A stretch of DNA of 58,314 nt, counting the filler, from Bipalium vagum (Eukaryota): the NCBI GenBank assembly GCA_037834085.1. It is 3 parts of 3 records of this genome, joined end to end, with 100 filler letters (N's around TTAATTAATTAA, not from the genome) between each part and the next. Parts side by side here need not be neighbours in the genome. Positions count along the whole stretch, not along the records: positions 22,494 to 42,621 come from JBBMKC010259826.1; 2 more parts are not named here. One strand, 5' to 3'. Shown piece by piece: positions 25,330 through 29,619 of the stretch. The notes below the pieces were generated by a model. It was not told the DNA's origin, did no database searches, and saw only the letters and a program-made list of their open reading frames with translations. The stretch's first letter is position 1. Each line of letters starts with the position of its first letter. The translations under genes and the position numbers were made by a program.

Positions 25330-27720
25330 TTATTTCAATATTTCACATTTGGCAATAAAATTACAGCCTTTGCAACAGATCATTTTGGTCAAAAGCTTTT
25401 TATCGGCAGTCTTCTTCAGCCATTTGACAGCAATGAACCTTCCCCCGAACCTGTCAACTGTACACAGACCATTCTGACCGATCACAGTCTGCAGAAAAAA
25501 TAATTAAGTAGAATCATCAGAAATCCGTTACTCTGATCATCGCAACTGCTGAATCGATGGGACTGTCCTCGTAGTCCTTTGGCCACATCTGAAACCTTTT
25601 CTCGACCTCCGATGAAGACTTGTCGGTTTCCAATTTTCTCTTACCCCTCGGTTCTATCAAACAGTGTTTCACGTCTGCCTTAGTTACGCCAACCGTCTGA
25701 TCGATAACCAAATCGTACACATGCATCTTCAAATGGAAGAGAACATCGAAGCGTTCCAGATCGACTTGGAAAACGGGCTAAACAAAATAGTCGTTACAAG
25801 AAAATTCTTCACAAAACCCATACCAAAATACTGGAACCGTCATTAAGGAGAAACGTGGCACACTCGTAAGCCTGGCGAGCCAGATCGACCGTTTGTTGCA
25901 AGCAGACCGCATTTGGTCCTGCGCTAGTCCAATGGTCCCCTTGGGTATTGATTGGCGTTCTGATGACGATGGACGGCAATTGACTGAATCGATTTTCTGA
26001 TTGTTTGAAAGGTTGCTCCATTTCTGTCATAACGTTCTCGGAAAACCCGCCGTTCAAATTAACTACCAATGGGCGGGTAGTCCAATCGAAATGAGCCAAT
26101 AGTTTCAAGAATCGCAGAAATCCACTGACAGGGGACCTGGGTGGAAATACGATTAAAATTGACAAAAAATTGGGATCAAATGTCTACTGAGGGCTGGACT
26201 TATATTCAGATCCTGGGTGCAGAAAGACATGAGACACGATCAGCTCGCATGCCAGTTCAGTAAAACACCAATCGGTCGTCATACGACGAGCATTGGAGTC
26301 GGAACTGTCGAGGAACAGGTCCAAAATTCTTTGATCACTATCATCGAGCAACTCCAGACATTGAGACGAAAACCATCGCTTAGCCAATCGACATGTGTCC
26401 TTGAACACGGATCCGAACTGTGTTCCCAGGCAACGAATGTAGGCATTAATCTCCATCACCAGGTCGTTCCTCATCATATATTCTCGAATTGGCTGAGGTA
26501 AATTTAGCAGTTTCTCGTTTCTGTCGATATAGGACGGCACGGCCGACGAATGTTTCCTCTTTTTGGCCTTACCAACTTCTCGAAACTCCGGTTCCATGTG
26601 CTGTCTTTTCAATACAAGCAATTCCTTTTTCACAACTAAGACGCACCGAAACACGAAACCCTTCACCAAAACGTCTATTGATCCGTCATTAAGAACTTTG
26701 CTACGGATTCGTTTGTCGGTCCACAACAATTTTGATATCTTTCCCATTAGCAAAGTTTTCATCATTTTCAGAGCACAGATGTCAGACGGCCACTTGTTGT
26801 TGTGTTCCGCCATTAGGCCAACTGCAAAAAGAAATGAAAACTAAGGTCAAGATAATCCAGAAGAGAAATAATCATTACCGTAATACACTTTGTTGATCTG
26901 ATCAATAGATGAATCGACTTTAAATCCATCAATAGATATTGCTTTCTCCGAAAAGAGATTTGTGTAACGGGACCAAGCTCCGATGGGTCGCATATCATTG
27001 ATGTGAACTGCCAGCTTTTGAAAGTTCTGTGAGGCTGTTGAGATGATCAGCGTTGTGCTGAGGACATCATAGGCTTCTTGAATGGTGGGACTGACCTGTT
27101 TGTTTATGTGATAGCTCAATGGATATCGGCGAGTAAAAATGTTCAGTTTTTCATGGTATATCTGGTGCCAGCCACTGTATTTACCATGGGGTTTAAAACC
27201 TAATTTTCTAAATTTAAATTTTTACTTATCATTATTTTGTTATGATTAAATATACTCTTCCATTATAAAATTTATAATTTTCATTAATAAATTTCCATCG
27301 TCAGGCCAGACTACGCACTCGTGAACTGCACCGTTGATGTGCATAACTTTGGACATGTCTCCCCATTTATTTTTAAAAATTACCGCTTCTTCCGTACCAT
27401 AAACTGGACCTTTTTCAGTTTTTAAATGTATCATGTCAGGATTTAAATATAGTCCAATTAAATAATTATTTTTAGCACTCTACATATATAATAATTGATT
27501 AAAATTTCAATGATAATGACAAACCTTAGCATGTAACTCAATGCCAAATAATCTTTTACCCAAATAATTTTTAAATGTATCCTCAATTTTTGATTGTAAA
27601 GATTTCCATGAAACCTTTCCATTTTTATATTCCTCAAGATTTTTTATTCTAAATGCTATGAATTTTTTAATATTGTAAATAAAATGCCTACATCACAACA
27701 TGATCATAATTATCTACCAT
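25330..27720 (-). CDS. NOL6: Nucleolar protein 6 / Utp22 / Nrap, intact portion (Nrap D3-D6). Exons 27720-27692, 27648-27525, 27479-27256, 27207-26879, 26821-26188, 26136-25824, 25777-25532, 25488-25330
   Basis: Seven GT-AG introns (43, 45, 48, 57, 51, 46, 43 nt) give one open frame of 2058 nt (685 aa + TAA). Motifs in NOL6 order: YDHVV, KGP..EAVIFKNKWG..GAVHECVVW, KWPSD, DVLVKGFVFR, RLAKRWFSSQ, SPVSGFLRFLKLLAHFDW..PLVVNLN, PVFQVDLERFDVL, DRFGGRFIAVKW. The true start is uncertain. Confidence 0.93.
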
Positions 27721-28773
27721 TGTCAAAAATTAAACATGAATATTAAAACAATGTTTTTTTATTAAACCTAAATGGGCAGAACTGTGATAAACTTTAAATA
27801 ATTTTAAAATATTTATTAAATAAAAATACATGCAATTAAAATAGACGACAAAAGCGAAAATAGATATTTAATACATTTTTAAAAATATACTTTGATATCT
27901 ACTTAAATAGATTGAATATTAAAAATTAATATAATGAAAATATGATTCATTAAAAGTTTTGATATGTAGTTAATTTTAAAAATTATAAAATATTAGTAAA
28001 GAAAAGATATAAAAATGCCAATTAAAGAATAATATTTTATAATATTTTCAAAATAATTTTTAATTTGATTTTATAATAAAAACGATAACTGGTAATAATA
28101 TAATTTATTTTAATCATTTTTCATAGTTTTATTAAAATAATATTTATTATTTACTTAATAATTAAAAGTAATTAGACTATTTAAAATTAGAATATTTAAA
28201 AAACTATACAGAAAGTTGTATTGCGTCAACACTAGAAGAAAATTGTAGTCTCCAAACGAATTCTGCGATATAGCCACCTAGATTCTGTGTTTTTCATCTA
28301 TGGTGCTTATTTCACCACTTTACTGAGACCCATAAAAGTTTAATATTATGTAATTCTGTTAGCCAAATTAATCCTGATAAAATATAATAATGACAAGGAT
28401 CAATTTCATAATCTTTTTAAAAAGTTACTCGAATTCTTAAATAAGTTCACTAAAATTAAAACATCAATTTTTAAATATTTCATTGAATAACCTAATAAAT
28501 TCTTACATTTTAATTTTCTTGAGCAAGTAAAAATGTTTATTCCAATATTTGATTGTTTTTAAAGTTGAATACAAGTTTTGATATGATGGAAGATTTTATT
28601 TATTCATTATTTATATTATATTTTCAAAATTTTCTTTTCTTTGAATATATTCATATTAATAAATTCATTTTACAATTTTTAAATTGGGTTCTTTTAAATT
28701 TTTACAATGTTATTCTTTTAGAGTTGATCCTATAAATTCGGAACTATATAGTGTGAAAAATCTGAATGTATCT

Positions 28774-29017
28774 GTTAGTTGAAAATAAATCGGAGATACC
28801 AGGATTCGAACCCGGGAACTTCACATGCGCATGCACTACTCTGACCGCTGAACTACATCCCTCGACTAATTTTCAATTTATCTCACATCCCCCTCCTGTA
28901 AAGCTCACATCCATACCTTTAACCGCCCCGAGTCTCTTTACTTATTTCCATTCAATTCCTTTACATTCAATTTACCACTGAGCTACATCTCCCGACTAAT
29001 TTTCAATTTATCTCACA
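28774..29017 (-). mobile_element. 244-bp TG...CA-bounded insertion carrying tRNA-derived sequence, with 6-bp target duplication
   Basis: GTATCT at 28768-28773 and 29018-29023. Minus-strand ends are TGTGAG... and ...CTAACA. Internal direct repeat of about 44 bp (28844-28887 and 28974-29017). Confidence 0.6.
28792..28862 (-). tRNA. tRNA-Ala-derived pseudogene / SINE-like head
   Basis: AGGGATGTAGTTCAGCGG (A box) and CCGGGTTCGAATCCTGG (T arm, B box); acceptor pairs with TATCTCC; anticodon arm does not fold canonically. Confidence 0.8.
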
Positions 29018-29619
29018 GTATCTAAAATTCGTATGCAGGCAATTTGATGTGAAATATAATTTTGATTCGTTTTTGTTAAAATTTTTAATTTCTATTTTTT
29101 AAAATATTCAATTTTAAATATTTATTTAAAAATTAAACGAAGATCATATTTTGAAAAATGTAATAGAATGAACTTTGTGTATCTTGACTTTAAATTATAT
29201 TTATTATGAGATGCTCTCCGATATTTTTCATCCAAATGATCATCATCCTGAACTTTCACAAATTCAATTTTTGAATTATTTTTATCATAGAAAGTCTTTT
29301 TCACAATAATACCATGTTTTAGAATTTTAAAAATTAATTTTATCTCCTTCAGTCACTTTCATTTCAAATTATAATTCAAATTATAATTCTTCATATTAAA
29401 TTAAAATTTTTAAAAAATTGAACCATTTTCATTGCGATATTTTCACTAAAAATTCAAAATATTTTGATTGAAATAATTCTTCATAAATTGATTTTATATA
29501 AATCACAAAACACATGATTTCTTGTTTATATTTTTTTTTCAAAAAATACTCAAAATTTACATAAATAAAAATGGTACTTAATTATAAAAATACAATTTAT
29601 TAAATTCTAAATATTTTTT

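Follow-up and report, generated by a model that had tools for sequence, protein, structure and literature searches.

A probably complete short NOL6/Utp22 gene beginning at Nrap domain D3 in Bipalium vagum

Introduction

NOL6/Utp22 is an essential protein of the small-subunit (SSU) processome. Here we describe a NOL6/Utp22 gene of Bipalium vagum, located in a window of 58,314 nucleotides (nt) that was assembled from three parts of the genome (GenBank assembly GCA_037834085.1) joined by filler letters; all positions count along this whole stretch. The gene lies on the minus strand of the 20-kb piece at positions 22,494 to 42,621 (JBBMKC010259826.1).

A first-pass annotation had described an intact 3' gene preceded by a cryptic 5' portion at 27721-29520, in which the N-terminal Nrap domains D1 and D2 were thought to persist as colinear peptide blocks broken by stops and frameshifts. 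Four explanations had been offered: (a) a nuclear cryptogene whose messenger RNA (mRNA) is repaired, (b) a truncated protein starting near the D3 boundary while D1-D2 decay, (c) a duplicate decaying at its 5' end, and (d) errors of the assembly consensus. From sequence comparison we consider the gene to be a complete and intact short NOL6/Utp22 of 685 amino acids (aa) that starts at D3, contains D3-D6 only and is preceded by non-coding DNA, a reading to which we assign a probability of about 85%.

Gene structure and domain content

The gene extends from ATG 27720-27718 to TAA 25332-25330 and consists of eight exons and seven GT-AG introns of 43-57 nt each. The coding sequence of 2058 nt (685 codons plus TAA) has no internal stop and every split codon is readable, so that the exon model bears out the flawless 3' gene with seven canonical introns proposed in the first pass. 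Protein searches were run per exon, and the tree described below was built from exon 5 only. The features of the gene are as follows.

27692..27720, minus strand: exon 1, encodes MVDNYDHVV and the first two bases of a split codon (I); matches the flatworm N-termini MD..(F/Y)DH(L/V)(V/I)IF
27649-27691, minus strand: intron between exons 1 and 2, 43 nt, GT-AG
27525..27648, minus strand: exon 2, first part of Nrap D3; tblastn match to the Clonorchis protein (P0024) begins at residue 10
27256..27479, minus strand: exon 3, C-terminal part of Nrap D3; 31 bits with a custom D3-D6 profile hidden Markov model (HMM)
26879..27207, minus strand: exon 4, linker and start of D4; 39% identity to the homologue on metagenome contig L001
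26188..26821, minus strand: exon 5, Nrap D4 and start of D5; 87 bits with the custom D3-D6 HMM
25824..26136, minus strand: exon 6, Nrap D5 (Pfam)
25532..25777, minus strand: exon 7, D6 region, weak signal; 8.6 bits with the HMM, colinear
25330..25488, minus strand: exon 8, probable end of D6 and stop TAA 25332-25330; 10.6 bits with the HMM

Pfam recognizes Nrap_D3 (PF17404) in exon 3 with an E-value (E) of 4.6e-6 and 27.3 bits against a cutoff of 23.1, Nrap_D4 (PF17405) in exon 5 (E 4.7e-10), and Nrap_D5 (PF17406) in exon 6 (E 3.2e-20, 73 bits) and exon 5 (E 7e-5). Exons 1-2 align colinearly with the beginning of D3 in the flatworm proteins. Exons 7-8 are without a Pfam match to Nrap_D6 (PF17407), and their custom-HMM matches are weak and colinear, as are the tblastn matches of exon 8 to D6 of three orthologues (P0012, P0026 and P0031; E 0.3-0.5); D6 scores are weak or nil in the flatworm orthologues too. 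Exon 6 aligns with residues 892-982 of human NOL6 (chain 7mq8_NH) at E 1e-14. D3-D5, and probably D6, are homologous to those of canonical NOL6/Utp22 (human, 1146 aa, PDB 7MQ8; fungal Utp22, 1171 aa, PDB 6RXV), whereas the window protein is without the N-terminal extension, Nrap D1 and D2. In the first CCA-enzyme-like module D1-D2, of about 420-470 residues, make up the head and neck.

The in-frame TAA reported four codons above the ATG is present at 27732-27730 on the minus strand, with no AG acceptor between the two. It is taken to be part of the 5' leader and not a break in the coding region.

The GC (guanine plus cytosine) content of the exons climbs from 5' to 3' (0.28, 0.25, 0.32, 0.40, 0.45, 0.48, 0.47, 0.40), and the most GC-rich 1 kb of the whole 20-kb piece is the 3' half of the gene. 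Possible causes are a local gradient, biased gene conversion or a shift in codon usage.

Flatworm relatives

An exhaustive phmmer search with exon 5 delivered few relatives, the closest being a metagenome protein (P0001, contig L001) with 41% identity, followed by NOL6 proteins with about 27-30% identity; an exact look-up of the exon-5 open reading frame (ORF) returned no record. The first exons on contig L001 are not placeable with confidence. Several of the relatives are 683-823 aa long and are matched by exon 5 near residue 265; they begin at Nrap_D3 profile positions 2-5 and are without D1/D2 in Pfam. Short NOL6 proteins of flatworms include the following.

Clonorchis sinensis KAG5451680.1: 782 aa
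Opisthorchis felineus: 782 aa
Schistosoma mansoni A0A3Q0KPK4, also S. haematobium, S. bovis and S. mattheei: 812 aa
Member of the Fasciolopsis buski cluster: 795 aa
Taenia crassiceps KAL5112351.1: 754 aa, with a later model start (D3 position 89)
Hymenolepis diminuta VDL20784.1: 823 aa

The O. viverrini model (1373 aa) is longer through a C-terminal, not an N-terminal, extension.

The complete flatworm N-termini, MDPVEVFDHLIIF, MDCVYFYDHLVIF, MDTLEEFDHVVIF and MDPLEFFDHLIVF, compare with MVDNYDHVVI in the window and share with it the motif M plus 3-6 residues plus (F/Y)DH(L/V)(V/I)I, the start lying within a few residues of the motif that opens D3. In full-length NOL6 proteins the corresponding FDH.V motif opens D3 at about residue 390-580. 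With a (F/Y)DH motif near its ATG and an in-frame stop upstream, the window gene appears to have a start of the flatworm type, and ATG 27720 is taken to be the true start.

The best tblastn scores to the window are those of flatworm NOL6 (E 1e-39 to 1e-45), against 1e-28 for full-length spider NOL6. In the maximum-likelihood tree of the exon-5 region the window protein and the metagenome protein P0001 (support 99/96) are sister to trematodes plus cestodes (94/95). The window protein resembles the short flatworm NOL6 proteins in its D3 start and its domain set of D3-D4-D5 and weak D6 without D1/D2, but with 685 aa it has a lower length, and its identity to them is only 24-28%. The genes differ as well: that of the window is compact, its introns measuring 43-57 nt, while that of Clonorchis extends over 25 kb.

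Four S. mansoni contigs of about 2.6 kb, each from a different run, carry the uninterrupted 812-aa ORF; the leader before it measures 148-168 nt and contains an in-frame TAG, between which and the ORF no ATG occurs. Taken as complementary DNA (cDNA), these contigs represent an mRNA without room for D1-D2. Neither the Clonorchis introns nor the 10 kb preceding that gene showed similarity to D1/D2. Among the NOL6-named flatworm proteins of the clusters seen, none has D1/D2, and each is the only NOL6-named protein of its species there. A longer model from S. rodhaini (P0051, 874 aa) has a 62-residue N-terminal extension, the equivalent of which in the S. mansoni contigs is a leader closed by an in-frame TAG; it is probably an over-extended prediction.

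The short NOL6 therefore appears to be an old form, of the same architecture as that of trematodes and cestodes: a truncation common to such distant flatworms implies that the loss of D1-D2 is old. Explanation (c), under which an intact full-length NOL6 exists elsewhere and the present gene is a 5'-truncated partial copy, is very unlikely. A full-length copy could be situated beyond the DNA searched, but the window copy is flawless over eight exons, and it begins at the position at which the flatworm orthologues begin, themselves the sole NOL6-named proteins of their species in the clusters seen.

Composition of the upstream DNA

Upstream of the gene the following features are recorded.

27721..29520, minus strand: alleged cryptic 5' portion, AT-rich (21.8% GC), non-coding
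28791..28862, minus strand: transfer RNA (tRNA)-like relic (tRNA pseudogene or head of a short interspersed element); Rfam tRNA 28.8 bits, just below the gathering score of 29
28974..29017, minus strand: partial second copy (44 nt, 91% identity) of 28844-28887, the beginning of the tRNA-like relic with its 5' flank

The three frames of 27721-29520 contain 158 stops, where a first-order Markov model predicts 158.2 +/- 8.9. The absence of a long ORF noted earlier is borne out: the longest open stretch is one of 76 codons (29125-29352, minus strand), a length reached or exceeded in 12% of Markov simulations. This stretch has a slightly GC-richer core and matches no Pfam family.

A/T runs of at least 4 occur once per 20 nt, and 60% of positions are within 6 nt of one. 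Those invoked for the homopolymer 'repairs' of the first pass, T5 and A7, are present, but with A/T runs every 20 nt breaks that are 'repairable' in this way are expected by chance. The intron-like GTAAG..TTTAG at 28506-28450 likewise exists in the sequence.

The acceptor and T arms of the tRNA-like relic fold, the other arms do not, and ARAGORN made no tRNA call at 28791-28862. The 44-nt copy sits 130 nt from the relic, with none further in the piece. Both fall between two of the peptide blocks listed in the first pass.

Search for D1-D2 upstream of the gene

Positions 28031-28067 were masked or skipped in the searches, and were included in the counts of stops and homopolymers. Pfam delivered no Nrap family at E<=10 in 62 minus-strand stop-to-stop pieces of at least 20 aa from 27733-31965, and neither Nrap D1 (PF03813) nor D2 (PF17403) was found upstream of the gene. 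The query set for tblastn consisted of the N-terminal parts of seven full-length orthologues, from a spider, a horseshoe crab, a millipede, a choanoflagellate and three metagenomic proteins. Their best high-scoring segment pairs reached 16-20 bits, against dinucleotide-shuffle means of 16-19 bits. Colinear tblastn chains gave no consistent excess over 60 dinucleotide shuffles, the plus strand or the reversed sequence. The chain statistic is noisy, with three of the seven queries equalled by only 3-5 of the 60 shuffles and a mean z over all seven of about 0.5, and it carries no signal.

A D1-D2 profile HMM was built from the seven orthologues and run with --max (filters off) on every open piece of at least 8 aa. 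In 27721-29560 no match exceeded -0.2 bits, and the best matches stood in scrambled profile order; over the whole 20-kb piece, both strands, with about 1500 pieces, the maximum was 4.2 bits. Neither residual colinear similarity to the lost domains, in tblastn, Pfam or HMM searches, nor a coding signal running on across frame breaks was found.

The peptides quoted in the first-pass annotation exist in the sequence, but their likeness to NOL6 D1/D2 is at chance level and their order is not colinear by Pfam, tblastn or HMM; 27721-29520 would accordingly hold no D1-D2 peptide blocks beyond chance. Translation of DNA with about 22% GC would be expected to yield strings rich in K, N, I, F, Y and L, which can be matched by eye to nearly any protein. 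The annotation had itself named a lack of significant Nrap D1/D2 similarity in 27721-29520 as grounds for abandoning a cryptic 5' half, and such similarity is absent.

Sensitivity of the searches

The D3-D6 HMM, built from these seven orthologues as well, reaches 207 bits on the window exons, all in order, with matches from profile position 79 to 642 along 27470 to 25384, so that D1-D2 of comparable divergence should show. In a leave-one-out control, indels were introduced in silico into D1-D2 DNA at intervals of 60-90 nt. Under this treatment the canonical protein P0026 still sums to 63-127 bits and the very divergent P0023 to 8-31 bits; the signal vanishes only at about 30% AT-biased substitution.

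Because indel-broken D1-D2 keeps 8-127 bits where the upstream region has 0, a functional but frame-broken or mis-assembled D1-D2 would be excluded by the sequence. The cryptogene of explanation (a) was rejected on this ground. Together, (a) and (d), a real D1-D2 frame hidden by mRNA-repaired frameshifts or by consensus errors in A/T runs, have a practically negligible probability: homopolymers are indeed frequent in 27721-29520, but at one every 20 nt they leave the 'repairs' uninformative, the gene's own D3-D6 give 207 bits next to a region with none, and the relatives are without D1-D2 in apparent cDNA. Genes whose mRNA is repaired by transcriptional slippage, insertional RNA editing or programmed frameshifting share with this region A/T homopolymers only; unlike them, it has no coding signal in any frame to repair. 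With nothing NOL6-like upstream to repair, (c) and (d) lose their motive.

Only a very old, fully eroded relic of D1-D2 would go undetected. A recent loss, with decaying remains of D1-D2 within 27721-29520, is highly improbable, even though the region has the right position for a former 5' half and AT-biased substitution of 30% or more would be invisible to the HMM. The same truncation and start motif occur in trematodes and cestodes, and a loss that predates the split from these groups is too old for neutral DNA to have kept its order. In addition, the HMM signal is zero, the stop density equals the Markov expectation and a tRNA-like insertion lies mid-region. Of explanation (b), the start at the D3 boundary stands, being colinear with the trematode and cestode starts, and the decay of D1-D2 in place falls for lack of residual similarity. 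The 1.8 kb upstream of the gene are best described as intergenic or promoter DNA without trace of D1-D2.

Several points weigh against the complete short gene. The flatworm sister relation depends on one exon of 210 aa with long branches and support of 94/95, the 5' end of the mRNA of the window gene is placed by homology, and the S. mansoni contigs are apparently cDNA, which we infer from their uninterrupted ORF. A full-length paralogue or a separate D1-D2 gene could exist beyond the 20-kb piece searched, and a relic with at least 30% AT-biased substitution would escape the HMM.

Mite parallel and the fate of D1-D2

A D3-D6-only Nrap protein of 686 aa is also present in the mite Halotydeus destructor (KAI1288455.1). 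Its gene (JAIUWE010000089.1; L006 10001-12156) is compact and lies only 733 bp from the Yippee gene upstream; D1/D2 were not found near it. In the exon-5 tree the mite protein groups with the ENA protein P0013 (683 aa) and the Logan protein P0030 (982 aa) in a clade separate from the flatworms. The mite protein and P0013 have the same length and the same D3-start domain set as the window protein; they differ from it by about 10 residues before the YDH motif and by their separate clade. The mite form is probably an independent truncation, so that the acariform mite lineage may have a parallel NOL6 truncation, but the gene may instead be a paralogue. D3-start forms in flatworms and in the acariform mite clade suggest that the D2/D3 junction is a recurrent breakpoint.

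Such a breakpoint also bears on the possibility that the gene is split, the D1-D2 half being made from a separate gene in Bipalium vagum and flatworms and joining the D3-D6 protein non-covalently. This agrees with the complete short gene at the present locus and differs only in how the lineage copes. D3-start proteins in at least two unrelated lineages (flatworms and the acariform mite clade) suggest a natural breakpoint, but no D1/D2 was found in the 20-kb piece or around the Clonorchis and mite genes, and the NOL6-named flatworm proteins in the clusters seen are all without D1/D2; we regard a split gene as unlikely. A word-index search whose query aligned two intronless D1-D2 segments returned two matches, and one with the spider D1-D2 region returned spiders and three unnamed proteins only; the sensitivity of both is too low to bear on a separate flatworm D1-D2 protein.

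Possible function and significance

Yeast Utp22 is an intramolecular pseudo-dimer of two modules resembling class I CCA-adding enzymes (Lin et al. 2013, PMC3794860), the halves of which meet at an interface of 1,621 square angstroms. Rrp7 binds to domains D6-D8 in the C-terminal module, and the whole Rrp7-binding surface is located there (PMC3794860). A protein from Pfam D3 onward would retain the second module in full, with the Rrp7 surface, and of the first module its tail end. By analogy, the short NOL6 could still work in the SSU processome via its C-terminal CCA-enzyme-like half.

That Bipalium vagum and parasitic flatworms run small-subunit ribosome assembly with a NOL6 lacking the D1-D2 head and neck, and with no separate gene supplying D1-D2, is put at even odds. 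The literature searches, which were not aimed at domain loss, returned nothing relevant on NOL6/Utp22 in flatworms and no mention of a loss of D1-D2. An essential SSU-processome protein exists at two-thirds length across flatworms and in the window organism. It could tell which part of Utp22/NOL6 is dispensable in ribosome assembly, and it bears on gene-completeness scoring of the BUSCO type in these lineages. Peptide matches made by eye in DNA with 20% GC are no evidence, and the 'missing' 5' half is accounted for once the nearest orthologues are compared.

Other features of the 20-kb piece

An open frame at 31975-32154 (minus strand, 59 aa) resembles by eye the C-terminal tail of an AGC-type protein kinase and has no Pfam match. 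Should it be the end of the neighbouring upstream gene, in the same orientation, the intergenic distance to NOL6 would be about 4.2 kb. A remnant of a mariner-type transposase occupies 41938-42529 (minus strand), with Transposase_1 at 42230-42529 (E 3.2e-20) and the end of DDE_3 at 41941-42240 (E 4e-4); the two parts are in different frames, and this mariner copy is therefore broken.

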